64,000 nt of DNA from Ruditapes philippinarum. Taxonomy: Eukaryota. The notes below the pieces were generated by a model, which did not search any database, had not been told where the DNA came from, and worked only from the letters and a program-made list of their open reading frames with translations. The position numbers were made by a program, and so were the translations under genes. Shown here in pieces: positions 9,801-61,756 of the stretch. Each line of letters opens with the position of its first letter. Within the stretch, counting starts at the first letter, position 1. The stretch covers positions 124,001 through 188,000 of the forward strand of contig NW_026852234.1 in NCBI RefSeq assembly GCF_026571515.1. The letters run 5' to 3'.

Positions 9801-10443
9801 AAACAGTGCTGAAACTCATTCCAGTCGTCTCACATCAAAGGAAATTGTACGTTGTTATCTTTATGAAATTAAGATATTTTAGGGACTTTTTTAAATGTTG
9901 TCAAAATAGCGGAAACAAGTTTCGTGTTCAAGACATGTGACCAGGTTGTAATATGCAAAATATTTTGACGTACGGTTATCAAGATAAAAATAGACATGTT
10001 CAAGTGTATGCAAGTGTGGATCAAGAAGGGGAGCCACGCACATGACCCCAAGTTTCTGTGGTTTTAACTAAAGATCTTTATAGGCAAGCCATTGTCAGGC
10101 CAATAATTTGGACTATATATACATTGTTGCATACAAAGAACATAAGCTCTAGGTTCATATTTCAAGTTATAAACATGAATGAATTCGGTCAGAAACAAAG
10201 AGCACCTGCAAATTTAACATGTTAACAACAAGTGACCAAAAAAAATTTGGCAAAAAAAGTTTATAAAATCACATTCTTTTGCGATCTGGATCGAACATGG
10301 CCAAAATAATACGTCATTTTCATATTAATAAATATTTCTTAAACAAGTGTACATGAAAAGCAATCAAATAAATTTGAAAAGATATGGTAAATTTCAGTAA
10401 AATTCTAACCTGTCTGTGGCTCATCTGTGTCGTCGACGTCCAT
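878..10443 (-). CDS. MARCHF6: E3 ubiquitin ligase MARCHF6/TEB4/Doa10, 5' part (coding exons 1-2; rest lies left of the window)
   Basis: Exon 1 10443-10410 (caaaATG; [11 protein letters not shown] + G, donor GTTAGA) splices in phase 1 to exon 2 974-878 (acceptor tttcAG, donor GTAAGA): [33 protein letters not shown], recognisably the MARCH6 RING-CH N-terminus. Not in the ORF track. Confidence 0.93.
5179..5842. mobile_element. TA-bounded MITE with ~28-bp TIRs containing two tRNA-like segments
   Basis: TATTGTCCAACAACATTGACCTGGCACT (5179-5206) is inverted at 5815-5842 with one mismatch. B-box GGTTCGAATCC on + (~5369-5379) and GGTTCGATACC on - (~5683-5673). Confidence 0.65.
6411..8907. mobile_element. 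Non-autonomous hAT-like element with 5-bp TSD, carrying a nested HINE
   Basis: TIR CAGGGCTCATCC 6411-6422 / GGATGAGCCCTG 8896-8907; TSD ATGAA at 6406-6410 and 8908-8912. Confidence 0.75.
7656..8575 (-). mobile_element. HINE-like element family B with 5 x 145-bp tandem array and (GGAC)n microsatellite
   Basis: Subterminal IR ATGTCTCCCCCAC 7685-7697 / 8561-8573 with hairpin partner at 8546-8557. Unit starts at 7767, 7912, 8057, 8202, 8347. GGAC/GACT repeat 8484-8531. Confidence 0.85.
8940..9310. mobile_element. MITE with CAGTGATTTTTTT TIRs
   Basis: cagtgattttttt at 8940 and aaaaaaatcactg ending at 9310; flanks AATTA/AATGA (degenerate 5-bp TSD). Confidence 0.55.
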
Positions 10444-10704
10444 TTTGATTTGATGTCGTAAATTATGTCAAAATTTGCCAAAAATGTACTTTTCACCAGG
10501 AACGTTTAGAATTATGCGGCTTAGTTAAATTTTATAAATCTTTCGTCTTTCAGATATTTCAATACTATAATGGCAAATATTAAATGTAACAAGGCTATGT
10601 TTACTTTTACGACATTAGACGATTTGGAGTAGTTTACACAGCAACACAATTTTCTGTAATTTTGGGATTTTTTTAATTCCCATAAACTTGAAATCTACGC
10701 AATA
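10444..10704. promoter_or_regulatory. Probable bidirectional promoter/5' UTR region between MARCHF6 and WDR88 start codons
   Basis: Divergent ATGs at 10443 (-) and 10705 (+), 261 bp apart. TSS positions cannot be determined from sequence. Confidence 0.55.
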
Positions 10705-19700: not shown

Positions 19701-21953
19701 CTGGGCAAGTTCATTATACAAATTTAGCAGGTTATATGTTAAAGGAATTACAATGAAGAAAAGTGTTGCTGTATATTTCAGGGTCATACAGACTGGGTTG
19801 AAGATGTTTGTTTCAGTCAGGATCAAAGTTGGCTCATGTCTTGTGCAAGGGTAAGTGATAGCTTCCTGATATTTTAGTTTTAACAATTTGGCTTATTAAT
19901 ATACCCTAATATGGTAGTCAACCTAGAACTAATTTCAAAAGTTTTTAAAAGTTTTATTTAACTGAAACTTATATTTATGACTATTTATACATATAAAGTC
20001 CTGCACTTTTGATGTTGCATTTGCTCAGAATGATTACTGAGGACTGTTTGTAGATATATTGAATTGTCTTTACCTCTTTTCCAGGACTGTACAGTTAGAT
20101 TATGGAATATAGAAGATTCTGATAAGATTCCTATAGTGCTAGAGAAGAAGAGAGCAATTGGTGTCAAAATAACAAAGGTAGGTAGAAATATGCGTATCTT
20201 AGTTTTTTGATGCCTTAACCCGCCAGAGACTTGGGGAATTTTTACATGAGTGAGCTGCTTAGCTTTAAATAAGGTGTTGACCGAAACCTTAGATCTTCTT
20301 ACACACCAGTAAGCTGGAAAGTCACTATATGAGCTTTATAAAGTCATAAAAATAAACCAAAGAAAATAAAAATTATTGCCTAAAAATTGAGTCTTCATTT
20401 TTCTATTAGCTGGAAGGTCTCTTATCAAAATTAAATGTATTTTATTAGTATAAAAAATTTTATGGACAAGATGGTTTTCTGTTAATTGTCAAAGCGAGAC
20501 AACTACTTCACCATTCTCTACTACTTTAGAATGTTTACAGTAAGTCAGCAGTAAGCCATATAATACGTCATTATCATTACGCAGGTCGCACATGCGCACT
20601 CTCTTTCTAGCTGAGCAAAGAAACGAAGAGGATGACTTTTTACATTCGCTGAAAATTTTACAATTTTTTCAAAAGAAATTGATTTTCCACCACCTCCCTT
20701 TCCTCCACCACTTTGACTGTTGACTGTATATGTTTGAAAATTTCATGCTCTAAGTTTTAATGTTTACATAATTATTAAGTCTTTATTTAGTATTATTAAG
20801 CAAAACTTTTAATTAGTATTTTTAAGCAAAACATCCATTTATTTATGTGATACTGTTTCTGCATAATAAACTTTTATTTCTAGGCCATAATTTACATGTT
20901 TTCTTTTAATCTAGTCAATTTTACATAAACGAGTAAATATTACATAGTTTGTAGTTTTTGTAGTTTATTTTGTTTACCGCCTCGGGTGGAATTTTCTTAT
21001 TGTTCCCATTTTTATTATGTTTTTTATGCTAGTCAATATCACACTTTATAGCTCATATTTCTTTTGTTAGTCAACATTACATGTTGTTATCGGAATTTCT
21101 AAATTCTCAGTAAGAAGTCGAATTGTTTACATTTCTGTTGCTTTATTTTGTGTTAGTCAATATTTCATGTTTGTATTATGGCGGAATTTCTAATCTTTTC
21201 CCAGATAAAACAAATTGTTTACATTAATATGTTTCTTTAATTTAGTCAATATTACATGTTTGTAGTTTAAATTGTTTATGGCTTTAATAAAAGCCCATTT
21301 ACAACAGAAAACTTGTCTTGACTTATTCATTGTTTTTTTTAAGCTACACAAACTCCTGTACCTGTATAACTCAACCACTCACCACACGATGGCCATAATA
21401 ATCTATTATTTACATTAACCCTTACTGGCTGAATTTGTGTAATGAATTTGCCCTTTTTTGAATTTTGAACAATACATTTGAACTTTAAGGGATTTTATTT
21501 TCAATACACAAATATTGTGCTGCTAACAGTATAGAGCCTGGCCAGACTGCACAGTTCTGCAGGCTGACCTGGCTCTGTACTGGTGGCAAAGGTTCTAACA
21601 GGTCAAGGGTTGAAAACCAAGAAGATTTTTTTAATTTTTAGACAGCAAAGTACTTTTCATTTACATGGTATATTTGATACATTTTACTTATATTGATTGA
21701 TTTAAAATTTGCTGTACTGTAACTTTTTATCATATTTTCAGTATACAAAAGTTACTTATACTTATTAAACAATTCTTGAATTTTTCAGTGTGAGAATTGT
21801 GGTAAACCTTTCTCGATGGCGCAGCTTGATGACGCCGGAGACCTCACTAGATGTGTTTTCTGCAGGGTTCATACCTCAGACTTGTACTTTGAGAAAATGC
21901 GAACTGAATCCACAAACCCTGAAGTTACCGAACCAACCGATCCGGAGAGTTGA
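10705..21953 (+). CDS. WDR88: WD repeat-containing protein 88, complete 10-exon model, ~404 aa
   Basis: Coding exons 10705-10794, 14065-14264, 14673-14736, 16397-16535, 17125-17251, 17830-18014, 18368-18450, 19782-19850, 20085-20177, 21789-21953. All GT-AG, phases consistent, total 1215 nt. WD40 repeats (GH...SWDK..IWD, GHEGSVSCC, GHTDWV) plus the WDR88-type end RLWNIEDSDKIPIV...CENCGKPFS...CVFCR. Confidence 0.9.
11880..12125 (-). mobile_element. tRNA-derived SINE family 1
   Basis: Reverse-complement match to 15555-15866 and 25375-25600; tRNA-like A/B boxes at the 12060-12125 end. Confidence 0.75.
12829..13512 (-). mobile_element. HINE-like element family A, full copy in WDR88 intron 1
   Basis: Begins acaag..tttcctgcgg and ends in hairpin ccctgcggtc-tcca-gaccgcaggg(aa); homologous to 1-300 and 47836-48366. 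Confidence 0.75.
15555..15876 (+). mobile_element. tRNA-derived SINE family 1 with (AATC)n tail
   Basis: B-box GGTTCGATCC; body shared with the 11880 and 25375 copies; aatc repeat tail. Confidence 0.75.
16625..16841 (+). mobile_element. tRNA-derived SINE family 2 (CORE-like domain), full length with TSD
   Basis: A box TGGCCGAATGG, B box GGTTCAAATCC, CORE-like ccttgagcaagaaactttacac. 10-bp TSD CAAGCATTGA at 16615-16624 and 16842-16851. Confidence 0.8.
19370..19656 (-). mobile_element. tRNA-derived SINE with Meta-like central domain
   Basis: Minus strand: tRNA-like head (gagctcaataggtagagcg) then gattgatcatgaaatccttttctacggtcatt, resembling the MetaSINE domain (recalled, not searched). Confidence 0.55.
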
Positions 21954-23317: not shown

Positions 23318-23986
23318 TATGTAATTCTGTGATGAATATGGACAAAGATATACAGAGGATTTCAGCTTAGACTGCACTAAATGCACCATTAAACATACAA
23401 GAAAATCATACAAGGACAGCATACCATTAAACATACCATTGAAACATACCATTAATTTACTGCTATCCACTGATAAGCCTTAAGGCTTTAACTATTGAAT
23501 ACAGTCAGCATGAATAACCCGCTTAAAGTAACTAATATTATACACATAGTTGGGCAACCTTGCACTTTGAGGTCTTGTATTTACTTTTTGCTCTTTTCTT
23601 GAACACTTCTTTCATGTAATTGCGTATAGCAGACAATTGTTTTTAATAGTAGCGAGAAGGGTTTACATAGCACATCTCCAGACTAATACATAGTTGGGCC
23701 ACCTTGCACACCTAAACAGTAGAAAGTGTGTCTGACAGCTACTGTAGTTAGTGTGCCAGGAAATGCCATTGAATGTGTTTGACACATATTGCAAGAACTA
23801 AGTAATGTTTCATAATTAAGCAAGAAGAAAATATGTTTAAACTATAAATAGTATAATCCCTTGAGTTGCTTATGGTTTACTGAAATTTCAGAGCAGTAAA
23901 AGAACAATGGACAATTTAAATTTTACAACAGTAAAGGGAACAATATAAAATTAAGCAGGTGAAAGATTTAAGAAGAAAATATATAC

Positions 23987-24221
23987 GAGCTGCGTCATGA
24001 CAAAACCAACATAATGGGTTTGTGACCAGCATGGATCCAGACCAGCCTGCACATCCGCGCAGTCTGATCAGGATCCATGCTGTTCGCTTACCAAGTCTTT
24101 TACAAGTAAAGAAACTGATAGCGAACAGCATGGATCCTGATCAGACTGCGCGGATGTGCAGGCTGGTCTGGATCCATGCTGGTCGCAAACCCATTATGTT
24201 GGTTTTGTCATGACATGGCTC
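23987..24221. mobile_element. Palindromic (foldback) MITE, 102-bp arms, 31-nt loop
   Basis: Arms 23987-24088 and 24120-24221 are reverse complements with 4 mismatches; AT-rich flanks. Confidence 0.85.
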
Positions 24222-25374
24222 ATATGTAAAAAGAATAGAAATAAATGGTTCATTTATTCTTAATAGCTTAGTTTATACTTCTGTACTAAAAAAAAAGCAA
24301 AAAACACTGATGATGTTATTCATGTAGGTGCCATGCATGTATTTTAGATCAAGTATGATTTCCAAATTGTTGTTAGGTTCTACTAGTATATCCGGACTGG
24401 GACTAAAAATGTAAAAGTGTATCCTCCTGTCCCAGATCCGGAAGACCAACATGTGAATAAAGGAGCAAATCTTATTTGGATCAAGGGAGCTAATCTTTAA
24501 TGTTCTATGCAGTGATCCCCTTTCTTGTGGTGTACTGCTCAAGGGAAGTAACCACTGTATGTACTTTGGCAAACTCTTCACATTGATTACCTCCCTTGGC
24601 AGAAATTGTACTGATAAGGGGAGATATCTGCGTAGTATAGTACTGCAAAGTGATTTCCCTTGATGTAAACAAAATCTTATGAAGGTTGTTTTAAATTATA
24701 CGGAATTAACATCTTTTCATCAAAAACACGCTTTCAGAATATAAAAAGGTAAACAGTTCTATCGTAAATAAATGAATTTCCATTTGAAGTGAACGAGTTG
24801 AGTGTATTTTAACATCAAATGCAGAAGAAAACTATTTTTGTCATAAGATTTCGCGATGTAAACATTGATGGTTCATTCAAAAATCATTGTTTTAAATGTA
24901 TTCTTGGACATAATCTAACGCATTATATTTTATCCGAAATGGTTTTTTTTATATATTTTCCATTTGCTATTCGTTTTCAGATTTATATACAGGCAACATT
25001 GGTTTAATATCTTGGACAACTGAATCTCAGTTTAACAGTTTTGTTTATACAGAATTTAACCCATTCGGCTAGCGATCATGAGATTACTAGTCCAACGCGT
25101 TTACCACTCGGCCATGCCTCCACTGAACAGTTTAATGTTCCTTTGAGGCCATTGATGCTTGTCCTTTTAAAAGTGATGAAGATTAAATACTGCTTAAGCC
25201 TGTGAAAGTTCATTGCCGCTCATGAACAGACTCATTCAAACCAATTGTGCAATTTTCACACAATTACTATTGTTTTATTTGGTCTCTTGGTATCTCCACT
25301 TTTCAAGATACATGTTTTTGGTAGGGGTTCACTATCAAATTGGTCTAATTCCTATTGTATAAAAATTGTTAAAC

Positions 25375-25600
25375 CACTGACTATCACTCCTGAGGTCCCG
25401 GGTTCGATCCTGGGTTACACCCTTGGGATTTTTCAGAGACACCTTCAGTGTTTCCCACCTACCTAGAGGTGTACTGGTAAGAAATCCAGGTAGTCGTCAC
25501 ATGTATCAGTGCTATACACTGGGCATGAAAAAGAAGGAAGGGGTCTATATAATAAGAGCTATAGGGACTGGTCCCCGGATTCTCTTGTATCTCATAGCTG
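25375..25600 (+). mobile_element. tRNA-derived SINE family 1, 3'-truncated
   Basis: GGGTTCGATCCTGGG plus shared body. Confidence 0.7.
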
Positions 25601-25964
25601 TATTTATAATGTATACAATGTATACCTGCTTAGAGTGAACGTAAACAATTTTAAAGCAGTATGATGTAGAAAATAGACATGGATGATCCTTTATTGAGAT
25701 TTAATTAATCAAAAAGAGTATTCATTGTATACTGTATATTATAATTTTTTATATTTAAAACATCTTTTACTGAATAAACAAATGCACATATTTCATTTGA
25801 AATATTTAGTAGATCTAATTAAATTAATACCTGAATCATAATGTTGAATAAGAGAGCAATTTCTTTTTTTTTTGATTAATTTTCTTGTACTGGTATTTAT
25901 AATTACATGCAACTTTGTGTATATATATAGGTGTTTGTCTAGAATTCAAATGGAAATTTGAGAG

Positions 25965-27063
25965 ATGAATAGAGTAGATCAACTTCATCGAGCAATTCAG
26001 GTTGGCCTGCTGCCAGAGGTTAAAATGCTGGTTCAACTAGGAGCCAATATGGACCATGTATTGGGTAGGAATATTACAGCTTTTATTTACCGTCTGTCTG
26101 TCTGTTTGTCCCTACTTCATGCGTGTCTGGACTGTAACTTTTTCATACATTGAAGGAATTTCTAAATAACTTGTGACAAATGTCAACCACATCAAAACGA
26201 TGTGTCGCGTCCAAGAACCATGTCCCTACCTCAAAGGTCAAGGTCACACTATCATTTTGAAGTTTCACATTATCGCAAATAAAGTAAATAGGTACACACA
26301 TTCGTGTCCGGAATGTAACTTAGTCATGCATCGAATGATTTTTAAATAAATGTCTACCACATCAAGACGATGTGTCCTGTCCAAGAATTACCTCTTTACC
26401 TCAAAGGTCAAGGTCACACTAACATTTTGAAGTTTCACTATATCATAATTAGAGTTTATAGGTACACACATTTATGTCCGACTTTAACTTTGTCATGCAT
26501 CGAAGGATTTTAAATTTACATGTACTAGGCATTAATGTCTTCCCGTCAAGTCAACATGTCGCCCTTGTCCCTACCGTTAAGGTCAAGGTCACACTTATAG
26601 TTTGGAGGTACTCATTCTCTTGAGAAGAGTTTTAAGATACTCATTCATATCCAGACTGAAAGTTTGTCATGCATGGAAGAATTTTAAAATAACTCAATGT
26701 CTACCACATCAAGACAATGTGTCATGGCTAATGCTCATGTTCATCTGTCCGTCCATGTGTCCCCACTTACACAACAATCATGTCCAGACTGTAACTTTGT
26801 CATGCACTGAGGGATTTTGACATAACTTGGCACAAATGTCTATCTCATAACAACATTTTGTCGCGTCCAGGAACCACGTCCCTTCTTTAAAGTCAACGTC
26901 ACACTTATATTTTGAAGGTTCACGCCATTACAATTAGAGATTACGGGTACAATAATACAAAAAACAATATTCAGCAATTAGTTACTTTCATTCTCTTTTC
27001 ATAATACCTGCATGTTTAAGAAACCTTTTCGGGGGCATTTGTCACTTGGGTGACAGCTCTTGT

Positions 27064-27102
<39 letters not shown>

Positions 27103-28979
27103 TTTTTGCAGGTATGAGAGGAACAGCTCTATGTGCTGCCATAGAGACAAGAAATTTTGAAATCACCAAGTTCTTGTTAGACTCTGGTTGTGATGTAAAT
27201 GCACAGGACTTCGATGGAGAACCACCGTTACTTCTTGCATTACGTAAACAATCGCCTGGACAAATATGTGGGAAAACAGCCTGTCTGGACATTGTTAAAT
27301 TGCTGTTGAATCACCCAAAGTGTAACCTGAACAAAGTCGACCCACTTACAAAAAAAAGCGCATTACATTTCGCTACAGAGCAAGACATGGCACAGGTCGT
27401 AGAATGGTTGATATCGAGCAAGTCAAAGATAGAGTGTAACATTAATCATATGGATGCAAATGGTAATGCTCCGCTTCATCTAGCTGTATTGGAAGGTTTG
27501 ACTGATGTTGTTGAGGTGTTAATCAGTCGTCCTAAATGCCTGATTAAGATATATAACAAGGCAGGTCTTACACCACTGCATATTTGTGCTCGTAACGGTG
27601 ATGTTGCAAATATGGAGAAAGTTCTAAGGAGAGTGAGCAAAGCAAGTGAGAAATGTGTCAGTCAAAAAGAGCAAACTGTGTCTGAACTAGATCTTAATCT
27701 TAATTCCATCACATTGATTGAAAAAGAAACAAGTTTGCACATTGCCTGTAAATTAGGACATGAAGGTGTTGTGGAACTATTGTTAAGATATGGGGCCAAG
27801 GTTGATTTGAAAGATTTTTTAGGCAACACTCCATTATTGGTGACTTTAGCTTCCTCACCACACTGGAAAACCAAAGATAATGGTATTCCGAAGATGCTTC
27901 TGAACAAGGGGGCAGATCCAAATGTGATATCTGTTGATCACCGATGCAGATACATTGAACCTAGCCAGGTGGTCTCTCCTTTGAGCATGGCTGTGAAGAA
28001 CGCAAATTTAGAGCTTACTAAGATCTTAATTTGTTCTGGTGCCGATGTAAATTTCACTGACAATATGGGTCAATGCCCCCTTTTCATTGCATTATGGGGA
28101 GGTGCTTTATCTGTTGCAAGCTTTCTTTTACAAGAATGCTCGTCCATTAATATCAATACACAAACAGATGATGGTAATACTTGTCTGCATGCGATTGTCA
28201 AGTGTAGAAAGAATTCAAACTCAAAGGACATATATAAGATTGTGAGGACAATCATGAATGCTGGCGGAAAAATTTACACAAACAAGGCAAACAAAACGGT
28301 GCTAGACAAAGCTTTCGAATACGAGGATCATATTCTTTTTGATGCAGTCTTAGAGGAATTGGACTGTTACATTGAAGACATTGAAGTTATAAATGTCTTT
28401 CAAAACAGTGAGGACACAGATGTATTTATATGTGGCAATGTTCCTGACGATATTCCAAAAGTTCAAAGATGGATTCACAAGGCAAGCTCGGAGGGTTTGA
28501 TTGAAATGATGAGGGTACTGCTGTCTCATGGTGCGGACATTGACGCTTCTTATTTTGACTATGATACTCATCAAAGCTTGTCCAATTTATACATTGCTTT
28601 GTATAATACAGAATATAAAATGGCAGAATTTCTGGTAAAAAATGGTGCCAATTTAAAAACTGAAAAATACATATATGATGAATTGGAAAAGGTTAATGGA
28701 AATGGTGACAAGAGAAATGATATCATTGTAAATGAAAGGGATATTGATGATGATGATGACGATGATGAATGTAGTTCTTCAGATGATGATGTATTTCATG
28801 GAAATGAGGAATTTAGAAATTGGCTACTCAAAGTTGCATGCACTCCTCAAACACTTAAACTTTCATGTCTTGTGATGATTCGAAAAATATTCATCAATAA
28901 TAAAATTCCATTTACCAGGATGGACCGTCTTAAACTACCAAATAAACTAACAAGTGAACTTCGTTACAAAGTGTTATAA
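25965..28979 (+). CDS. Ankyrin repeat and SOCS box protein (ASB-type Cullin5-ElonginBC substrate receptor), ~655 aa
   Basis: Exon 25965-26064 (MNRVDQLHRAIQVGLLPEVKMLVQLGANMDHVL + G, donor GTAGGA) joins in phase 1 to 27112-28979. Many ankyrin repeats (GNAPLHLAV, GLTPLHICA, ETSLHIAC, GNTPLL), an acidic tract, and a C-terminal SOCS box TPQTLKLSCLVMIRK...LKLPNKL. The ORF-track N-terminus (FIYL repeats) is intronic microsatellite. Confidence 0.9.
26088..27064 (+). mobile_element. HINE-like element family C with ~170-bp tandem units, filling the ASB intron
   Basis: (GTCT)n start; repeated tcaaaggtcaaggtcacact units (26231, 26401, ~26576); 3' palindrome tgtcac-ttgg-gtgaca and CTTGTT end. A related short copy lies at ~33655-33800. 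Confidence 0.7.
27063..27103 (+). repeat. (TTTA)n microsatellite
   Basis: About ten TTTA units immediately before the ASB exon 2 acceptor. Confidence 0.9.
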
Positions 28980-32072: not shown

Positions 32073-33232
32073 TTATGTCCCCTTTTGAAGGACATTTTGT
32101 TTTGCAGAATGATCAGTCATTGTTTCCAATAAATAACTTTAGAACGCATTGGCCAAATGTCCTAAAATTTCATAATAGGTGTATTGGCCTTGGCCAGTAA
32201 ATGACTTCTTTTGATTTAGGGGTCAAAGGTCTAGGCCATATTGACTTTGTATATCCAAACGGTTTCCGACCAATTACTCCACAACTCATGGCCCCTCAAA
32301 CTTCACAGGTGTATTGGTCTTGGCCAGTAGATTACCTCCATTGATTTAGATTTAGGGGTCAAAGGTCAAGGCCACATTGCTATTGTATGTCAAAACGGTT
32401 TCAAACAAAAGAACCAATGGGCCCAAGGCCCTGCAACTTTGTTTTGTTAGTGGATGACCACTATGGATTTTGGAGTTGGAGGATCAATGGTCAAGGTCAT
32501 GCTGACCTTGTATGTCAAAATGGTTTCCCACAAAACAACTCGACAACCAATTGGCCCTTTGGATCACAAACTTCACAGGTGCATTGCTCTTGACCATTAG
32601 ATGGCCCCAATTGATTTTGGTGTTAAGTGGTCAAAGGTCAAGGTCATATTGACCTTTATTGTCCAGACAGTTTCCGACTAATAACTTGACAACCAAATTT
32701 CACTGGTGCTTTGGTCTTGGCCAATAGATGACCCGGAATAATTTTGGGGTTGCAGGGACAAATATCAAGGTCGTATATCAAAACGGTTTCTGACCAATAA
32801 CTAGATAACCCAAGGGCCTCATCTTTATTGCTTCACAGGTGCATTGGTCTTGGCCAGTAGTTGACACCACCTGATTTTAGGGTCAAGGGGTGAAAGATAA
32901 AGATCACATTGGCCTTTAATGTCAAAACGGTTTTCGACCAATAACTCAACAACCCATTTGCCCTCGGCCTTATATCTTCACTGATGCATCATTATTCTTG
33001 GCTAGTAGATGTCTCCAATTGATTTTGGGGTTTTAGGGTCAAAGGTGAAGGTCACTTTGACATTGTATGCCAAAATGGTTTCCGAACAACATTGCATGTA
33101 ACTTCCGACATACTGACGAAGTTGTCATTCTAGGAAGAGTGCCACTCTGGTAAAATTTCTCCATGCCCGTAGGAGATTACGTCTTAAGTTTCTGTTTGAT
33201 CAGGTGAGCAGTATGGGCCAATTTGGGTCCTA
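32073..33232 (+). mobile_element. Old HINE-like element with degenerate ~120-130-bp tandem array
   Basis: About eight units containing ggtcaaaggtcaaggtca / aacttcacaggtgcattggtcttggccagtag; caggtgagc...gggcc end. Confidence 0.65.
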
Positions 33233-33879
33233 TTCAATGATTGATTTTAAACGGTGATATATTTATCATAAAGTTTGAAATCAAGACCCAATCTAAAGAT
33301 AGGATAACTTGCCCTTGAAAAATTGGTCAGTAGAGTATATCAGATAAAATCTGTGTTTACTGTTGAGTTTTGAGGTCACAATATTTAAATACGTGATGGA
33401 AACATCAACCATGATGTAATTATATCATAATGACAAAATGAAATTCTGGCCTCTAAATGATCTGGTCAAAATTAGTGTGGTTTATAGGATATATTTTGGT
33501 GCCAATCTGTAGGGGCTACTATGTGCGTTTAATAATGTATTTATTAGCCATATAAAAGCCATATAAACATAAGATACATGGATAACGATTCCTGGTATAA
33601 TAGAGTGACTCAATTGATATAGTAGTTAATGAAATTTATTTATTTATTATATGTTTATGCCTCGGCATATCAAATTCGTACTGTCCGTCGGCCCGTCTGT
33701 CTTTGCGTCCCCACTTACACAACATTCTTGTTCGGACTGTAACTATCATGCACTGAAGGATTTTAAAATAACTTGGCACAAATGTCTGTCACATCATGAT
33801 AAAAGTTTGCACACAAGTTATTGGTTCAGACCTACATCAAATCCCGGATCCTGTCATGTCAAAATAACTCAGTCCCTTT

Positions 33880-35638: not shown

Positions 35639-38600
35639 ATGGCTACAGAAACGATGGACGATACGGACAAAGAAATGAGTCTGGGTAAATACATGAAATT
35701 ATGTTTTTTATTAATGTAATGTTTTATATTGTACATGTATTATATATTTATTCTTCTTAAATATTTTTGCATTGTAATGATCATTGGAAATCAAATTACA
35801 TGTCTTTGTTTTTAATTCAGGCAAAGGTAAAGGGGTGGGGGTGCAGTGAGCTGCTTGTTGAAACGAAATAGAAAACTAAATTCATAAAGTATACATTGTA
35901 TTTACTGCCATATTCACTAGTATGTATAAAACTGTATATAACGGATGGGGTTTTGTTTGTTTGATTTGTTTTTAGGGGATGGAATGTGCATTAATGTGTT
36001 GAAATTAACGACATCATAAATAATGAATTTTATTTACAAGTATTTTATGGACAAGGTGACTCAACAGCATATATAATATTTTCTATAGTAAATCTTGTAT
36101 TTTCGTTGATGTCCCCAAGCCCAGATCGGGCGAATTTACAGTTAGTGTTAATTTCCTTACCCCTTTGTTGTTTTGTGTACAAATTTGTACATTTATTTTG
36201 TATTTAAGGTAACCATGTATCCAGGCACGGCCTGACGGAAGAGGAAGATAAAGAATTTGAAGAGTTCCATAAAAGTTTAGGGTAAGTGATTCATTTCTGA
36301 TTTAATTAATTCTTAAACTATTATAATTCTTATTCGTAGACTACTTAAGTAGCCTAAATGCATGGGTTTCGAACTTTCTGTGTCTACCAACTCATATTCT
36401 TGTTGTATAAGTCTCCGATACATTTTTTAGTCCCCTACCGGTTTACCGGAGGGGACTTTAGGTTTACCCTCCGTCCGTCTGTCCGTCCGTCAGTCCGTCT
36501 GTCTGTCCGTCCGTCAGTCCGTCCGTCCACAAAACTGGATCCCGCGATAACACAAAAAGTGCTGAAAATATTTTAATGAAACTTGATATATGGATAGATG
36601 GCAGTATGGAGATTATGCACGTCTTTTTCTTTTTTTCCTATGCTGAAAATTCTGGTTGCTATGGCAACAAATAGACTGAAAATATGGCAGATTTTACACA
36701 TAACCTGGATCCAGTGATAACGCAAAAAGTATTGAAAATATTTTTATGAAACTTGACATATGGGTAGATGGCAGTATGGAAATTATGCACATCATTTTCT
36801 TATCTTCCTGTGTTGAAAATTCTGGTTGCTATGGCAACAAATAGACTGAATTTCAAGATTTCTGATTCTAGTTTTTAAGTTTTTTCACTATAAGTTCTTT
36901 ATTTCTTAAGGTATTTTCTTCAAACTTTAAAAATTAGTTGCTAGTCATCAACCACATCATATGTGACAAAGTTTACAATTCTAGCACAAAATTTATCAGA
37001 ATTACCTCCCTTGAACTTAAAATTTTCATGGAAAAAAACATTGTTTTTTTTAATAACTTCTTTTTTTCTGAACGTATCTACTTCAAACTTCATATAAATG
37101 TTTCTTATTATCACTCAACATTTGTGAGTGTTCAATACTCTAGCAAGACTATTTCCAGAATTATGCCCCTTTTGAACTTAGAGTTTTTTTTGAGAAATAG
37201 GTAATTTTTACTCCAACTTATACAATCATGATAGAATTTTCATCAAACTCCCTCATCATTATAATATGACAAGGTTTATAAATCTATCATCCATATTTCC
37301 AGAATTATCTCCTCCTTAAACTTTTTATTTTTCCTATTTGTTCTTTTAACTTTCATTTACTTCAATTTCAAAATAAATATTCAATATTCATACCTTCATT
37401 ACTAATTGTTCTTTGTTACACTCACATCATGTATGACATCGTTATCTCCTTTTTTTTTTAAATTTTGCTTTTAAAATGTTATATTTTGATAACAGGGATG
37501 TTTAAAAAATAACTTTAGACTGTCCTTCAGTCTGTCTGTCTGTCTGTCTGTTCACTGTGATCACTTTTAAAGAACTTTTTCAACAAATTTACTTAAAATA
37601 GAAACATAAGTGAATGGCCAATGGCCCTTCAGAATGTTGCTTGGGCTCTTACCGGTAGGGGACTTATGAATTGCTTGCAATACTATGATAATTGCTTGTT
37701 ATATAAATAAATGAACCCCTTAACTTTATAAAATATCTTATATCTTCAAAAAGACACATATTTATTATCAATTATCTATCAATGTAAATTCTATATTTAT
37801 CTTGTTTGTATTGTAGTCTTTTCATGTTTCATGTTTTCATGTATACTTTTCTTGAAATAAAGGGGCTTTAACCTGGTTCAAAAAAAAATAAAAAAATATA
37901 TTTATAAAAAAAAATATATAAATATATATAAATTCTACAGTCACATTTTGCCTGCCTTATTGCTACTTTAAAAGAAATTTAAGATAACACATATAGATAG
38001 CGTAACAGTCTGCGCAATATTCACAAAGTTTTAAGAATTGGAATCAAAACATATACATGTATGTATGAGGCATTATTTAATGCCAGGTAACATTTGCAAT
38101 CAACAACGTAACTATGGAATGTAAGTCAACCTGAAAGTAATTCCACTATGCGTGTGTGCAGTCTTTTTTCTTGATCAGCTATCGCAAGAAAATTGTCTTA
38201 AAAGTTTACATAACAAAATACTACAAACATATTGTTTTATAAACTTTATAACTGTGCTAGTAATATCTCAGTTTATCATCTTAACGGAATTTCATTTCTA
38301 CTTTTTTCAAACTGTATCTATTTTTCTTCCAATACCACCAGTTAATTCCAGTAATATCTATTTTGCCAGGCTGGTTATAATACTGCCCATTTAGATTGGA
38401 ATGGTGGCAATTACTATACCACCACGCACCATGACTACTTTTCGCACAATTCCCCAAGTGTGATGCGTCCTGATCTCTATCATATGTTGAGAACATCATT
38501 CCATTATGCCACTCAAGAGAATCTCCAGCAGTTCCACTGTATCCACTCACCTCCAGTTTGTAATTGTCTTCTTCCGGATATACCTTGAACTTGCTATACT

Positions 38601-41600
38601 TTGCATATGCACTGTTTCCCTCAAAATCTTCCATATCTATTCTCAGTTCATGTCCGCCATCTGATGTTAGTAGACTCAAATGTTCATTGCCAAGCCAGAA
38701 CTCACCATTCAGATCACCAAAGCCGTTTTTATAATCAGCCCAGTTTCGATAAAAGTCTGTTTTACCATTTAGTCTTCTTTGAAATACTATCCAGCCCCCA
38801 CCGTCAGTAGTTTGGTCACAGTAAATTTCAAAACCTTTTGGATGATTGTAAATTTTATTTTCCATCTGATTTATTTTTTTTAACGAAAGACAGGGGGAAC
38901 TCGAGAATGGGTGGCCACTATGTATTAATAGAAAAGTAACAAGTGTTTCAATGTTATCAATTTGTTTAGATATTTTCATATCATTTTCAGTGTTTAGTTG
39001 TACCTGTTCAGCCATACTTTTCAACGCTTTAATTTCAGGTGTTATTATGTCTTTGTGCACATCTTTGACCTTTTCAAAATTAGTTAATAATTGATCAGTG
39101 TTATTTACAGCAACTTCGCAATAATCTTTAACATCTTTGTTTAGGGATATCAAATTGTTTTCAATCTTTGGAATTTCCCGTCGTAATCTTACAATCTCAG
39201 TTTTTTCATCAGTGAAGGCTGCCCTAAGTCTAGTGAAATCCTCTTTCAATGTATCCACAGTTTCAAAATCAATGTCATCAGCTTTTGATGCAACTGAAGG
39301 AATGGGCTGTTCTTTTCCTATTGTAGCATTTAGCACTTTATCTATGTCATCTAGTCGTCCTATAATTTCAGCAATATCTTCGTCTCTAAACGTAAACTCG
39401 GTATTAAGTCTAGTTTCTAAATGTTTGACCTTTAACTTTAGCCGATCAATTTTTTTTGCTGAACTCGTCGAAGCAAATACACTGAGGAGAATGACTGTTA
39501 CTTTACCAAACAACTGCATATTTATATGTAAATAATTGTTGTGAAACTTTCTTGAAGCTGGTACAAAATATTTGCCCATATCAGTTTAGAATAATTTGAA
39601 AACAACTTGAAACAATCCGATTCCTTTATTCTTAAGAACAAAATTTTATCCCATTCGTTCACTATTCTATCAATTTATGATGTATAATTTTCTCTCGATC
39701 GAAAGAATGTATTGTTTATACATAAATTTAAAATAACTACTTTAATCCTCTTATTCTTAAGAGGTTGTGAACTGTTCTCTTGCCTGTCAAAAGAAACAAA
39801 TACAAGATGCATTGAAACGAAATGGCACCAGTTATTTTTTCCTCAAGTGTTTTAAGGTGAGATACTTGATTAAATCTAATCATAATAATGTCAAGTATAC
39901 ATACAATTATTAATTTTCCCAAACAAGTTTCACATGATGTTTTGAATGTAATCTAAAATTTATTTCCGGTACAATAATAGGACAAAAGTATTCAAATGCA
40001 CGTGCCAGAATGTACATTATTTGAAAGCTGCCTCCTGATAAATAAATAAACTTAAGGGTCTTTCCTCAGTTTATATATTATTATAAATTATTTCTTTTTA
40101 GTCCCCTACCGGTTTAACCGGAGGGGACTTTAGGTTTACCCTCCGTCTGTCTGTCCGTCTGTCTGTCTGTCTGTTTGTCTGTCCGTCAGTCTGTCTGTCT
40201 GTCAGCCCGTCAGTCCGTCAGTCCACAAAAATGGATCCCGCGATAACGCAAAAAGTACTGAAAATATTTTTATGAAACTTGATATATGGATAGATGGCAG
40301 TATGGACATTATGCACGTCTTTTTTTTTCTTCCTATGTTGAAAATTCTGGTTGCTATGGCAACAAATAGTCTGAAAATATGTCAAATTTAACACATAACC
40401 TGGATCCAGTGATAACTCAAAAAGTACTGAAAATATTTTTATGAAACTTCACATATGGGTAGATGGCAGTCTGGAGATTATGCACATTTTTTTCTTTTCT
40501 TCCTATGTTGAAAATTCTGGTTGCTATGGCAACAAATAGCCTGAATTTCAAGATTTCTGATTTAAATTTTTCAGCTTTTACACTATGAGTTCTTTATTTC
40601 TTAAGGTGTTTACTTCAGACTTTAAATATAAGTTTCTGGCCATCAACCACATCATATGTGACAAGGTTTGCAACTTTAGCACAAAAATTATCAGTATTAC
40701 CTCCCTTGAACTTAGAATTTTTATGAAAAAAATGTTGTCTTTTTTAAATAACTTCTTTATTTCCTAATGTATCTACTTCAAACTTCATATATATGTTTCT
40801 TATTATCACTCAACATTTTTGAGAAGGTTAAATACTCTAGCAAGACTATTTCCAGAATTATCTCCCCCTTTAACTTAGATTTTTTCGAGAAATAGGTATT
40901 TTTCACTCTAACTTCTTCATTCCTTACAGGATTTACTTTAAAATCCCACATCATAATAATATGACAAGGTTGTTTAAACAGAATTTCCTTACTAGGCAGG
41001 GAAACTTAACACATTACTGTGATATAGACAAACTTAGAACTGAAAAGGTTTAAGTTCATTCATGTCATTCATCCACTGGTAAAATTGAATGGCCAATGGC
41101 ACATCAGAATGCTGCTGGGGTTCTAACCGGTAGGGGACTTATGGATTGCTTGCAATACTATGTTAATTGCTTGTTTTTTTTTTAATTTTGCCTTTTCAAA
41201 ATTAAATTCCGATCTGAAATAATTCTACACACTATATATTATAACATGAAAAGTATGCAGTTTTGTATTCAATATGAACAAATGATGACGTAATAAACAG
41301 AGAAACCAAATATGTAAATGAGGCATGTTATGGGTATGTAAATTCATTATTTTGCAGGTTAGTGAGTAGCTTTACCAAGCAGATGGTGAAGCTTGCCATT
41401 GACCAGTTACGACCGGAGTTTGAGCGGATGGCAGGCAGAGCTGCTGAGAGGGCATTGGATTCAAAAATGATGAAAGTATGTTTATAAAATTTCTTATGCG
41501 TTTTCTGTAAAATTTTCGATGAAGTATATTCATAATTATTATTTTGAAAGAAAATAAAGAGTACCTCCACATTTTTTACGACAAGAATTAAAAGGATGTA

Positions 41601-56070: not shown

Positions 56071-59000
56071 TCACTCAGAGTTGTCAGGCAAATATTGCTG
56101 ATACTCATCAGTAACATCCACAATCATTCCTTCCTTGGTAACTCGAACAATATGTGGACTGTCACCATGTTTTCCTTTCTTTAACCCAAGTAACATCTTT
56201 TTCCGGGCTCGGTCCTCATCTTCAACTCTTGTGCACATAACATAGCATTTCCTCTTACCGCACTGTTTTGAACTAGCTACATTATGTGATTCATCCTGAG
56301 CAAGGTCAACTTTGTTTCCTGCATCCTGTCTAGGCTCCACATTGTTTCCATCATTATCTGACTGAGCAATATCAACAACCTTATCATGTTCACATACATA
56401 ATTCACACTAGAAGAATTACAAACTGAGCATTTGTTCTTTTTTGTTTCACCATCAGCTGCTATATCAGTCAAAACTGCGGATTTATCATCATCACACTTT
56501 AATAAACTGGTCGTGCTGGGAAAAGTAATAGTTTCTCTTTTTGTACCACTGTTTTGGTCAAAAGTGTTGAAGTTTTTAGATTTGCTATCAATATCATTTT
56601 CTGTCTCCTGCAAGGGCGACGAGCATTGAACTATTTTTGTTTGGTTTTGCAGCTCCGTATTGCCATCTTCCACAACAGATCTTGGTAAGACAGTATTATG
56701 CATTATACTGTGGCTTTCAACATCAATATCATCTTTAACAATAACTTGGAATGCAGTCTGGCCTACACTCAAACCATCTTCAACATCAATATGGTGGCAG
56801 TCTTCTTCAGTTTTAAGCAAATCTGTTTTCGGGCTATTATTTGTGGATCTTAACTGATTTCTGCCATCAGAAGTAGTATCATTGTTGTTAACTGTCTCTT
56901 CACTATGATTCATCACATTGTCTACAATTCCTGCAGTTTCACAAAAACCACCTCTTTTTTCAATATCAACACTTGAATGTTTAGCATTCACTACGGAAAT
57001 AACATTCTTGTGTCTATTTTCAATAGCCTGATTGTTCAAATCTTTTTCTTGAGATTTATCATTACTATCATTAAGCTCAACTGACCAGTTCAGAAACTTG
57101 TCTAAGTCTTTTAAATTATCTGTCATACCCTTTGAACTATTTTCAGTTAGTAACTTATCTAAACAAGCTTCATTTACACCTGCATCTTCAATTATAATAC
57201 AATCTTTATCAGCATTAAATTTTCTATCAGCAGCAATCCCTTTCATAAATACAGGTAATATTACTGAAGTCTTATTCTTATCACATTCAGCACTTCTTGG
57301 TCCATTGTTTCTTCTTTGATTAGTTTTGTCAATAAACCCATTAAATAACATCTGTTTTTCAACATTGCACTTACTATTTTGGTTTTCCTCCCTTATTGTT
57401 GAATTTGCCATGTTCCCATGACTGGTTATCTCAGAACTTTTTGATGTATTCATTTTTGTTTTACCCTTAATACTTAAATCAAGCCCTTTACAATTGGCAT
57501 CAGTATCAGTTATTGTATAAGGTCCAATTAAATCACCAACAACATGGTTTCTATACATAGGTTTGTTTTCTTGAACATCATGTTTTACAGACTGACAATT
57601 CTTTTGAGTTTCATCGGAATTTACAATTTGCTTTGTAACATATGCTTCATTTTGCTTCAAAGGTTCAACATTTTCTGCTTTCCTGCCATGTAATTGGTTA
57701 TCAGCATGAAGCTTTTCACCTGATAAAGTGTCTTTAACATCTTCATCTTCTATAAGATTAATAACTTCAGTTTCAGATTCTTTTACATTTTTACCAGTAC
57801 CTGTATTTAATGATAGGCTATTTCCTTTATCATTTACATTTTGCTTTTTAACAATATTTATATCTTTATTATCATTATTATGCTTCACATTCATTACTCT
57901 TACATCAGCACATGGATCTGTACAGAGTTCCTCATTATCTTCTTTACCTGCTTGTGTTTTGTCCTTTGAGACATCTGATCCAACATCTCTAAAGCATTCC
58001 ACAACAAGGATATCACTACTTGCATACTCAACAACATCTACAGATGCATTACTATAACTTGACACTTTTATATTGTTTGTTCCAGTCGCTCTTTTCCAAC
58101 AATCAAGATTAGATTTTCTATTTCTTCTACAACGCTCAACACAAGTTTTGTCTGTGCAAATATGTTTCTTTGGATCTCTCACCTCCTTTGGATTTGGTTC
58201 TGGCCAACTGGCCAACTTAATATTCAACTTACCCTGTGACTTAGACTGGTCTGCCATGTTGCTATTTCTGCGCTCATTTGAAAATTCCTCTATCTCTGTA
58301 CGAACTTTTCTTTCTACATTACCACAGCTCCCTTTTCGTTTGCTTCCTTTACCTTTACAAACTTCAGATTCTGATCTATTTGCAGCACTTGTAGTAGCAT
58401 TATTCATATCTAGATCAACATATAATGGAATTTTCATATGGTTTGCAACTATTCTATTCAGACCTTCTACATATGAGTAAGGTTTTTTAGTTTTAAGCAA
58501 CTGACATTCCTCATTTGTTGGAGACTCCATCGCACTTTGATCTACCTTGTGATGCTTGTGTTCTTTCTGTGATATCTCTACACCTGTACTTATGCCAGAA
58601 CTTTTCTTTAAACCTTCGTCTTTGCTTTCTGTTGTCCCCGATTCAAAATTTGGATCATGTACAAACTCATCTATATAGGTCACTGACCCAAACTTTTTTG
58701 TAAGTTTTTTTAAACATTCATTTTTAACGTTACTGCTAGATCTACACCCTTTCACTTTAGCACTCTCTTTGGATTTTATTTCTGTCAAACACTGACCAAT
58801 CCTCTCACAACTTTTACTCCTGCTTTGTCTCTTTTCACTGCTACTTACATCAGCAGTATTTTCCGACTTTGTCTTATCAATACGAAAATCTGTTTTAACA
58901 TCTTTCCCGTCATGTTCTTCAATTTCAAGATTTTCAACAACAACATCTGGTTTATCATTTTGATTCACTTCAAACTCATGTGCAATCTGTCTTCTACCAG

Positions 59001-61756
59001 ACATTACCTTCAAACAAATGCCCTTATGTCTAAATGCTGTCTCAGTTGTTGCTCTTGGAACTGTCAGTGATTCAAATGTCTGTAAAAAATAAATCATTTT
59101 TTAATTTATTTTTTTTATAAAAAATGTAAGAAAATTTAAATCAGGGTATCTAAAGGAATTATAGATGAGATAATTACTATATAAGATTATGTAATCACAA
59201 AAAAAGACAATGCACTCAAAAACCTACACATGTTTTTTGAATAATAAAACAATTGTGTCAACCACACTTGGATGTCAAAGATATACTTCACAGTCAGCCA
59301 GAAGTATGTAATGTTGTGACAGACAGAGCAAAAATAATTTGTCCCTTATCTAGTGATCTGACGGGCATTTATGTAATAACTATGTTAATATATTAATAAA
59401 AGCTTTGACATGAAACTATGATTGGAAAAGCTTTCAATGCATCAACAAATTATTTGTAATAACACTTCAAAATTCACCCTTAAATGGACTCCATTGATCT
59501 TGTTTTTGTTTGGCATGAGGGTACTGCATAAGTGGATATTTCTTTTTTCTGCATTTTTATTCTATTTTATAAAGATCTATTCCAATAACTTGTGTGCAAA
59601 ATTTTAGAACATTCCCTTATTTTGTTTTTCCATAACAGTCATTTTTGTAGTGTAAAATGACAAAAATGAAAAGTGTAATGCTTTTTTATTTCCAATCAGG
59701 CTCAGAACCACACTTAATATCAGTTTTCACTTGAATTTGTTATCTTTTATCTTAATTCAACTTCAATAGGTGGCAGTCTAGAAGTTACTATAAGTAGCCA
59801 GCTTTGACTGTAATAGCTGTCCTTTATAATATCATTTTTAATTAAAAGGTTGTACATTAAAGTCTCTGTAACTAAATTTAATACAATTTGGTAGTCAACT
59901 AAGGAAAGATATACAAAAAAGATATTATGTGCAAAAATATTAAAGCTTTCTATACATTGTTCACTTCCAAAGGAAGAAGGAAGGATTGGGGACTATTGGC
60001 CACCTCACTGCTCAGTCAAGCATATCAAAACTAAAGCTGCAATAAAAGTGACGAATACCCCCACTATCTCTAATGACAGAGGATTTTATTTAAGTGCGAT
60101 AATCATTCTTTTTGATAGCCAACCTTTCAGCAAAGATTAATGTAAATCCTTCAAGGGGTTTAGGACTAACAGCAGAAACAAAGTTGTCAAACAGTTGAAC
60201 TTCAAGGGTAACTCTGACTATGAGATAGCACAGCAGTGTTTATTTTCTTGAGTTTTAAGTCATACCCGCTTTGTAGATCATACGGTGACTTTCCAGCTGT
60301 CCTCATGGGCATCTGTGCATTATTTTAGGTATAAGTGGGCACCAGAGTATAACCAGAGATGTTCTGTAGGCTCTAAAGTCTAGAATCTAAAGTCTTTGCC
60401 TGGTTTCTTATTCACAGCAGTAAAGAGTGAGTGACTCACAGTAAACAATCTAAACCTTCATAAAATTAATATTTGAGCCAAGTTCGTTGAAAATCAATCA
60501 GGTAGCATAGGATTTATAAAACAGACATTGTGGAGATGGACATACAAATACCAGTATAGTCCTTTCCACAGTGTATGGTAGGGGTATAATAATGCTTACC
60601 TCACTTGGATTCTGTTCCACCTTAACTTCTTCATTATCTTCATATTCACTGTCAGCCTCAACTTTTGCGACCATGTTTGAGCCTTCATTTATCGATCCCA
60701 CAAAACTCTTTTCACATTCTTTTTCATGCATCAAATAATGTTTGTTCAAATATTCTTTTCGTGCAAAACCTTTATTACAGATGACACAAACAAACTCCTT
60801 GCTATTGAGATGGAAACTTTTGTTGTGTCTCAAAAAACTTCCTGAAAATCAAAACATGTTTGTTACAACTTTTAGATATTTTCTGCATAAAATTTGGGGC
60901 TTTCATAATAATTTAAGTACAACAGCTGTAGGGTGTATTGGGAGACAAAGATTCTGGTTACTGCTTAGAAGTTTTGCTAAACACAGGTAAAACTTATTGT
61001 GAAGTTACTTTGGAGAAAAAAAAAATGAAACCGTTGTTTAAGAGGTGTTTGCTCAACAGAGGGCCTCTGTAAAGAGGTTGTACTATAGATTTATTTGATT
61101 TACAAAATATGTACATATTCAATAATCCTTGATACAGCTTTCTTAAGTTTTTTCTCTGGCAACTATGCAGCATTACAAAAAGATAAATTATTTCAGTACT
61201 GTTTGTTTTTTTTGGTTTAATTGGGTTTTATGTCACACCAACACATAATAGGTCATATTGCGACATTCTAGCTGTACTGATGGAGGAAGACCTCAGAAGC
61301 CCTTCCGTACATTATTTCAGGCACAAACTGGCACCTGAGTAGAACCACTGACGTAAGCTAGCCGGATAGCTTCCTCACATGAAGGAATCCAAACTCCCTG
61401 TCGGGATTCAAACCCATAGCGGTGAGGGGCAAGTGGTTTGAAGTCAACAACCTTAACCACTCAGACATGGACACCCCCTATTTCAGTATTAACTTTAACA
61501 TTTGTTCATAATACAATACATACATAGTAAACACTTACTCTTATGAGCGAAGACTTTGTCACACAGCTGACATTTGACAGTAGGCTTCTGTCTGATGTGT
61601 ACGAAGAACCTGTGATTTTCCATATGTTGCACATGATCGAACAGCCTGTCACAGAACTCGCACTTTATCGAGAACTCTCCAGAGTACGTGGCATGCCAGT
61701 TCATGTGTGACTTAAGCTCTATCTCCTTCGTACATCTCTTCTTGCAAATGTTGCAA
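56071..61756 (-). CDS. C2H2 zinc-finger protein, 3' part (upstream exons not found in window)
   Basis: Exons 61756-61539, 60841-60600, 59079-56071, phase-consistent. Four fingers: CNIC..HMNWH, CEFC..HRFFVH, CQLC..HNKSFH (split by an intron), CVIC..HYLMH, followed by a 1002-aa low-complexity terminal exon. Confidence 0.88.
61200..61478 (-). mobile_element. tRNA-derived SINE family 3, in zinc-finger intron
   Basis: Reverse-complement of the 31342 family with A/B boxes at the 61400-61478 end. Confidence 0.7.

Follow-up and report, generated by a model that had tools for sequence, protein, structure and literature searches.

In a 64-kb stretch of the genome of the Manila clam, Ruditapes philippinarum (hereafter the window; G000:C721:124001-188000, in whose numbering positions are given unless another contig is named), an intact intronless FReD gene with a TATA box lies between two transposable elements of the Helentron type that share one orientation (A and B), and the three together occupy a spliced intron of a plus-strand coiled-coil gene (Table 1). 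A preliminary description had recognised this arrangement from the sequence, and alignment, the open reading frame (ORF), the Pfam match and the splice and RNA evidence all bear it out. Searches were made in an assembly of 1.41 Gb in 15,874 contigs.

The intron 36283-41357 is genuine. The upstream exon ends GG/GTAAGT, the acceptor at 41357/41358 reads TTTTGCAG/G, and the two exons agree in reading phase. Run X15 yielded an RNA-seq contig (752 nt, depth 28.5) that contains exactly 41357-41477 and is unlike the window on both sides, as expected of a spliced mRNA. On the upstream side, the depths of 4.03 and 7.28 that the same run shows in the bins 36050-36233 and 36234-36417 equal those of a depth-28.5 contig covering approximately 36208-36282. 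In the stranded run X22, first mates at the host exon lie on the minus strand, which places the host RNA on the plus strand. When the left remnant of the intron was searched against its own genome, it matched itself and two short stretches of 55-79 nt further upstream. After removal of the block formed by A, the FReD segment and B, the outer flanks read ...CATTTTT and TTTTTTTTAATTTT..., and the intron measures about 323 nt.

Table 1 Features of the locus and of related array units (window positions unless a contig is named)
Feature	Position	Strand	Remarks
Host coiled-coil gene, exon upstream of intron	36208-36282	+	ends ..NHVSRHGLTEEEDKEFEEFHKSLG; donor GTAAGT at 36283; from sequence, frame and RNA depth
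Left remnant of original short intron	36283-36423	+	single-copy; terminates CATTTTT
HINE A	36424-37700	+	1277 nt
A, 5' subterminal inverted repeat	36429-36441	+	AGTCCCCTACCGG; preceded by T string, followed by complementary inverted repeat
A, (GTCY)n microsatellite	~36470-36528		~15 units
A, 170-nt tandem repeats	36528-36850		x1.9; further ~160-nt repeats to ~37330
A, second microsatellite	37530-37551		(GTCT)n
A, 3' subterminal inverted repeat	37652-37664	-
Repeat X	37699-37932		right-hand ~215-235 nt of an old ~930-nt interspersed repeat; truncated by 3' end of A
Cargo	37701-40094	-	2.4-kb segment derived from FReD tandem-array unit; paralogue homology 37699-40099
FReD gene	38281-39579	-	intronless; uninterrupted ORF, 432 aa; N-terminal coiled-coil half, C-terminal fibrinogen domain
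HINE B	40095-41175	+	1081 nt
B, 5' subterminal inverted repeat	40100-40112	+	AGTCCCCTACCGG; preceded by T string, followed by inverted repeat
B, (GTCT/GTCC)n microsatellite	40142-40224		~15 units at 40145-40203
B, 170-nt repeats	40224-40545		then ~160-nt repeats
B, 3' subterminal inverted repeat	41127-41139	-
Right remnant of original intron	41176-41357	+	single-copy; starts TTTTTTTT
Host gene, exon downstream of intron	41358-41477	+	LVSSFTKQMVKLAIDQLRPEFERMAGRAAERALDSKMMK; from frame, splice sites and X15 RNA contig
FReD array units	C10813:30477-32888; 9385-10473 + 15188-16512; 21353-21786 + 23538-25522
~235-nt repeat, paralogue side	C10813:16742-16981, 25759-25998, 33130-33367; C7047:40104-40338
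~235-nt repeat, elsewhere in window	15548-15778, 25368-25599, 11883-12116		three copies

Build and family of the flanking elements

The regions 36423-37700 and 40095-41175 are joined by direct repeats of 81-91% identity in blocks of 93-300 nt, and no inverted repeats of at least 30 nt were found. Aligned to each other, A and B have the first ~880 nt (87%) and the last 93 nt (90%) in common, and their 3'-half interiors are unlike. The 13-nt motif AGTCCCCTACCGG occurs four times in the window, on the plus strand near each 5' end and on the minus strand near each 3' end (0.08 occurrences expected by chance; 0 of 100 shuffles reach four), so placed as a subterminal inverted repeat (subTIR) of either element. 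In both, the order is T string, 5' subTIR, complementary inverted repeat, GTCY microsatellite, 170-nt repeats and ~160-nt repeats, and both terminate ...GCTTGTT. The T string is counted here as part of the element, and A starts at 36424; the preliminary description had begun it at 36429. The inverted repeats complementary to the 5' subTIRs give predicted 5' hairpins of 12-13 bp with −12.3 and −13.7 kcal/mol in A and B, respectively (z = −4.2 and −4.7; 0 of 200 shuffles as good). In runs X1 and X22, many reads or contigs join 37507 to 36485, i.e. the 3' interior of A to its microsatellite, with 15-26 other letters between, and thus other genomic or transcribed copies carry this module in tandem or rearranged.

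The family is abundant, with 7195 first-look candidates for a 7-kb query that contained both elements, and A and B are its sole copies in the window. Both end motifs were located in 19 of 20 other copies that were fetched. In these 19, a T-rich string (TTATT, TTTTT or TTGTT) precedes AGTCCCC, the end is GCTTGTT and the flanks differ; comparison of the two flanks of each copy revealed no target-site duplication. Insertion at TT, T strings at the boundaries and lack of a target-site duplication are thus found together, as in HINEs, the non-autonomous Helentrons, whose hallmarks as set out in parts of PMC4067079 and PMC7492417 also include subTIRs, a complementary inverted repeat, a microsatellite and satellite-like repeats. 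By these sequence features A and B are identified as HINEs, the sole weak feature being the 3' palindrome considered below.

Elsewhere in the genome, 17 near-full-length copies match A at 94-98% identity and 19 others match B at 91-97%, whereas A and B are 87% alike. The divergence of A from the consensus of its 10 nearest copies is 1.7% (21/1262) and that of B from the consensus of 9 relatives is 3.0% (32/1060), both values leaning low because the relatives were chosen as best matches. As judged from these comparisons, A and B belong to different subfamilies, each to a single one over its whole length, which speaks against hybrid elements made by recombination. The preliminary description had cautioned that the two copies diverge and differ in their 3' interiors, and this caution was well placed. 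Origin of A and B from one duplicated element, by tandem duplication or as a rolling-circle multimer, was ruled out, since each is closer to other copies than to its neighbour.

Two of the 19 other copies are irregular: one directly precedes a copy truncated at its 5' end, and in the other the 5' end is doubled. Section 15 of PMC4067079 attributes arrangements of this sort to missed terminators, and the two cases indicate that this HINE family yields such products. A source of Helentron enzyme is plausible: the genome holds 94 matches to Helitron_like_N (the Helitron Rep domain), and an open frame of 2643 aa (L061:1019-8947, on G000:C4213) encodes an OTU-like protease, DUF6570, Helitron Rep, a PIF1 helicase and a C-terminal Exo_endo_phos endonuclease. 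This domain order is that of a Helentron, a (GTCY)4 run lies ~900 nt downstream of the frame, and the whole apparently represents an intact Helentron.

The FReD gene and the limits of its homology

Residues 248-432 of the predicted FReD protein match Pfam Fibrinogen_C (PF00147, E = 2.2 × 10−70), and a signal peptide is likely from Met21. A minus-strand TATAAA at 39720 precedes the ATG by ~140 nt, and ATTAAA at 38081 follows the stop codon, ~200 nt downstream. The closest named proteins are fibrinogen-like proteins of R. philippinarum itself (best identity 85%). The exact 432-aa protein was not found in a collection of 5.8 billion proteins in which paralogues from the same assembly appear under NCBI names, which suggests that the nested gene lacks an annotation. 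Against two intact paralogues, dS is 0.16-0.19 and dN/dS 0.37-0.41, with similar values for both halves of the protein, which is indicative of moderate constraint on this copy. Invertebrate FReDs are generally held to be immune pattern-recognition proteins, and the putative immune role of the present gene is taken from its family.

The FReD gene is transcribed antisense to the host gene. RNA contigs of run X15, each with 1-4 differences, span 38272-39466, and the upstream spacer 39546-39913 has a depth of 0, a pattern that fits a transcript of this FReD lineage better than carry-over of DNA. Stranded X22 reads on the gene also have the sense of a minus-strand RNA, but they carry 4-7 differences per read at the sites listed and may stem from paralogues; the claim of transcription is therefore based on the X15 contigs. 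Contigs of the FReD lineage, ~99% identical, are present in runs of two other studies.

The closest paralogues are C10813:30477-32888, a unit of a tandem array (90% identity), and C7047:37470-39859 (88%). The match to both spans 37699-40099 and extends no further on either side. On the left, it stops at the TT that doubles as the last two bases of A (0-2 nt from the end of A); on the right, it stops inside the 5-nt T string that precedes AGTCCCC of B. Among themselves, the paralogues stay alike beyond these limits, on the left for another 1236 nt and on the right for ~775 nt. Homology hidden beyond the HINEs was ruled out: Smith-Waterman scores of the outer window flanks against the paralogue flanks were 18-22 (19-22 for the left remnant), no better than shuffles, which averaged ~20.

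The left break falls within repeat X. In the close paralogues this repeat is whole (C7047:36759-37684) and lies just downstream of the FReD gene in each; its copies are ~80% alike, and the paralogue left flank has at least 173 first-look candidates at 79-84%. Of four other copies fetched, three pass the break point and reach C7047:37680-37684, and the fourth, which reaches 37539, also passes it; two of the four match the window, at 37699-37932 and at 37703-37896. That the left break is simply the natural end of a repeat in the paralogues was ruled out, because X extends ~215 nt into the cargo, and neither the paralogues nor any of the four other copies show an interruption of X at the break point. 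Origin as a retrocopy was ruled out as well: the homology of the segment to paralogue DNA includes ~520 nt on the upstream side of the ORF and ~580 nt on the downstream side, and no poly(A) tail is seen at its end. By these alignments, the intron holds 2.4 kb of what elsewhere is a larger array unit, and this foreign piece is cut off at a HINE end on either side.

In a tree of nine units (a short 5' fragment on C10813 was omitted), the window copy forms a three-way polytomy with C7047 and the C10813 clade, and the end branch of the cargo measures 0.04 changes per site. The FReD array itself has the appearance of birth and death, with one unit whose ORF is broken (longest frame 243 aa) and two units split by insertions of 4.7 kb and 1.75 kb. 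A repeat of ~235 nt, with 1283 first-look candidates, lies ~230 nt to the right of every close paralogue unit. Satellite arrays with periods of ~166 and ~145 nt surround the FReD array (C10813:1-4122, 7975-9264, 36380-38008 and 39433-40881), and the ~145-nt satellite is related to window 7772-8473 and 32447-33055.

Origin of the block

The block 36424-41175 is read here as a single insertion of a composite rolling-circle (Helentron-type) unit consisting of A, 2.4 kb of host DNA and B, a reading that in our judgement has an even chance of being correct. Under this scheme, an A-type HINE would first have entered the TT within repeat X just downstream of a FReD gene in the tandem array, and a B-type HINE would have entered, in the same orientation, a T run that preceded that gene by ~520 nt. 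A transposase provided in trans by a Helentron would then have started at the 5' end of A, missed the terminator of A and stopped at the 3' end of B, and the resulting 4.75-kb unit of A, gene and B would have integrated in a T run of the ~323-nt intron of the coiled-coil gene. The anatomy of the locus, the break points, the subfamilies of A and B, and the integrity and transcription of the gene are established by the data; how the donor was arranged, that one event sufficed and that a transposase acted in this way are what we infer. The FReD copy retains its promoter region and poly(A) signal, and its frame is still open.

A composite that moved as one piece predicts that homology ends at both inner HINE ends, where it was found to end, and two chance insertions do not predict this. 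A and B also share their orientation, as a composite needs; a 5' end from one element and a 3' end from the other suffice for it, so the difference in subfamily argues neither way. The preliminary description had proposed a composite transposon-like unit able to move, duplicate or delete the gene. The composite part of that proposal is in line with the HINE build, the carriage of a whole gene with its flanks and the end of homology at both inner ends; continued or repeated mobility is not, the junctions being unique.

Several observations weigh against the composite origin. No donor with both elements is present in the assembly, where the next-best match to the cargo is 90% identical and lacks HINEs. 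The preliminary description had itself named a lack of association between the paralogues and the HINE family as speaking against its idea, and no such link was found: HINE homology within 1.5 kb was present at 0 of 11 paralogue loci. With up to 3 mismatches allowed, neither inner junction string matches anywhere in the 1.4 Gb except at this locus. The composite has no second copy, and the case for mobility is thus built on one inferred event. The ages do not fit readily, for A (0.017) and B (0.030) have diverged less from the consensus of their subfamilies than the end branch of the cargo is long (0.04). Any composite event has to postdate A, and the donor lineage must therefore be assumed, in addition, to be lost or unassembled. 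Such a loss is conceivable in a birth-and-death array with one broken ORF and two split copies, and in a fragmented assembly.

Further points on the same side concern the elements and the alleles of the locus. The 3' palindrome ATTGC..GCAAT is a stem of only 5 bp with a predicted fold of −3.2 kcal/mol (z between −0.8 and −0.9; equally good folds in 39-41 of 200 shuffles), and no autonomous element with the AGTCCCCTACCGG subTIR was found within 17 kb of either of the two long Helentron frames covered. Helentrons make no target-site duplication, and the usual proof of a single insertion is thus lacking. The empty or solo-element allele that the preliminary description had envisaged did not come to light: the assembly contains no second haplotype or empty site at this locus, and the joint of 36423 to 41176 is not among the 15 read joints listed (306 more exist). 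The inner junctions are not bridged by any contig listed from public reads; these contigs are too short, and the repeats too abundant, for presence or absence to be settled by reads.

The age order would come about without a missing donor if the events had been sequential, that is, if the FReD segment had been copied into the intron independently of transposons, by template switching or by end joining at T-rich microhomology, and B and later A had then hit its two junctions (cargo branch 0.04, B 0.030, A 0.017). The junctions are T-rich (CATTTTT/TTATAT and TTTCTTTTT/TTTTTTTT), a context favourable both to joining at microhomology and to targeting by HINEs, and both the absence of HINEs at the paralogues and the lack of a second composite agree with such a course. 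However, two insertions exactly at the two junctions would be required. Modelled as two independent insertions into the 2717 nt that are left after removal of A and B, the probability of one insertion at each junction is ~4 × 10−6 to 1.4 × 10−4 if any TT/AA is a target (709 sites) and ~1.2 × 10−2 if only the 13 T/A runs of at least 5 are targets. The latter, generous model is without support, given that a run of at least 4 T follows the 3' end in 0 of the 19 other copies with both ends; T runs are no evident hot spot, and the window holds no further copy of the family. The probabilities are rough and post hoc, yet they make plain coincidence unattractive, and on balance we regard the sequential course as unlikely.

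HINEs could also have been involved by routes other than a jump of the two-ended composite. In one variant, A alone would have read through its terminator, carried the 2.4 kb along and landed directly before a resident B; in a second, homology to a HINE already in the intron would have admitted either a circle that carried one HINE and the FReD segment or a tract of gene conversion, a course that resembles the repeat-mediated recombination proposed for the DINE-1-flanked duplicates of Drosophila; in a third, two adjacent HINEs would have been nicked where they join and filler DNA copied in. All three predict the same break points as the composite model. HINEs that directly adjoin were found in 1 of the 19 copies, adjacency of Helitrons is reported in section 15 of PMC4067079, and DNAREP1/DINE-1 has been described at the break points of seven dispersed duplicates, with recombination or mobilisation under discussion (parts of PMC2211543). 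The recombination variant sits poorly with an A that is wholly A-type and a B that is wholly B-type, without a sign of a hybrid, and with paralogues that lack flanking HINEs; nor do the paralogue loci, 0 of 11 with HINE homology within 1.5 kb, agree with a duplicate made by recombination after the model of Yang et al. 2008, the true parent of which may be unsampled. The first and third variants call for an extra coincidence or an undescribed step, and every one of the three still needs an unsampled source copy younger than A. Even taken together, we consider these variants doubtful.

A misassembly, in which the FReD segment and the HINEs belong elsewhere and were misjoined into the intron through their repeats, appears highly improbable. 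The assembly is fragmented (15,874 contigs), and the listed contigs of two independent DNA runs leave the inner junctions unbridged. A 331-nt DNA contig of run X4 also lends itself to this explanation: it fits 41184-41444, and its first 70 letters are off the window where the 3' end of B is expected. Its departure at the T run after B may represent a different allele at this junction. By contrast, an artefact would need two switches that both return to the same 323-nt intron; a contig of run X1 spans 41135-41406 and bridges the 3' end of B to the outer flank; two other studies have runs with ~99% identical FReD-lineage contigs; and the assembly offers no alternative location for the cargo.

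As a more general, and clearly speculative, extension of the composite origin, HINE pairs in the Manila clam may recurrently act as vehicles, any same-orientation pair allowing a Helentron enzyme to copy the bracketed gene with its promoter. If so, expanded immune-receptor families such as the FReDs would be continually supplied with dispersed copies by rolling-circle composites, which would also feed presence/absence variation in them.

Comparison with known systems and other features of the window

Immune-receptor families of bivalves, among them the FReDs, are greatly expanded and vary between individuals, and we know of few DNA-level routes that would scatter whole working copies of such receptors. 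The capture of gene fragments by Helitrons has been thoroughly documented in plants and in bats; to our knowledge, Helentron-type capture has been suggested only from DINE-1-flanked duplicates in flies. The clam locus falls within the known kind of Helitron- or Helentron-associated gene duplication and stands out by break points defined to the base, a complete expressed gene and a bivalve host.

The nearest parallel is in Drosophila. End bypass or composite transposition was proposed for DINE-1-linked gene duplicates by Thomas et al. 2014 (PMC4067079, section 15), and Yang et al. 2008, in the parts of PMC2211543 used here, weighed recombination against mobilisation for seven dispersed duplicates with DNAREP1/DINE-1 at their break points. 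Common to the fly duplicates and the clam locus are a non-autonomous Helentron at the break points of a DNA-level duplicate that keeps its non-coding flanks, and a functional-looking new copy in a new genomic context (parts of PMC2211543). Apart from its bivalve host, the clam locus differs from the fly cases in that each break point coincides, to the base, with the end of a complete element, the two elements being of different subfamilies, and in its cargo, an entire immune lectin gene that lies antisense within an intron. The clam loci of parental type are without the element, whereas several fly pairs share the repeat at both copies, for which recombination is favoured (parts of PMC2211543).

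The clam unit resembles the Helitron captures of maize and bats in that a rolling-circle 5' end and, downstream of it, a 3' end enclose host DNA and that there is no target-site duplication (parts of PMC4067079 and PMC7492417). Classical Helitron captures, as described in the same parts of these papers, mostly involve gene fragments in multi-copy elements with TC...CTRR ends that insert at AT, whereas the clam unit is of the Helentron type (subTIRs, T strings, TT target), contains a complete gene with its promoter and is single-copy. In modular build and high copy number, the clam HINEs are like the bivalve elements Cg_HINE with Cg170 (parts of PMC7492417) and pearl, CvA, DTC84 and BIV160 (parts of PMC5139131). 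The build common to bivalve HINEs and pearl-like elements in these sources is a 5' subTIR with inverted repeat, a GTCY microsatellite, ~170-nt repeats, a 3' subTIR and a short palindrome. The likeness to Cg170 and BIV160 drawn here is one of build, and the parts of PMC7492417 and PMC5139131 drawn on treat the dispersal of satellite repeats and report no host gene moved between two elements.

Composite transposons of bacteria, in which two insertion sequences bracket a cargo and the outer ends serve as the ends of the larger unit, offer an analogy only: they move by DDE cut or copy, whereas the clam unit would be a rolling-circle one that requires direct orientation and makes no target duplication. 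We found no description of a HINE pair carrying a whole gene in a bivalve in the literature within reach of the search, most subscription journals being beyond it. The clam case provides a concrete and testable mollusc example, a complete transcribed lectin gene between two abundant HINEs inside the intron of another gene, and suggests that element pairs with non-element interiors deserve genome-wide attention.

Elsewhere in the window, the next intron of the host gene contains a 185-nt repeat (42059-42243) for which 40 scored copies, of 926 first-look candidates, are 93-98% identical; it often occurs in inverted pairs on one contig and looks like a young short interspersed nuclear element (SINE) or miniature inverted-repeat transposable element (MITE). 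Two long single-exon frames lie at 27060-28979 and 56071-59097, one encoding a 639-aa ankyrin-repeat protein on the plus strand and the other a 1008-aa low-complexity protein on the minus strand.

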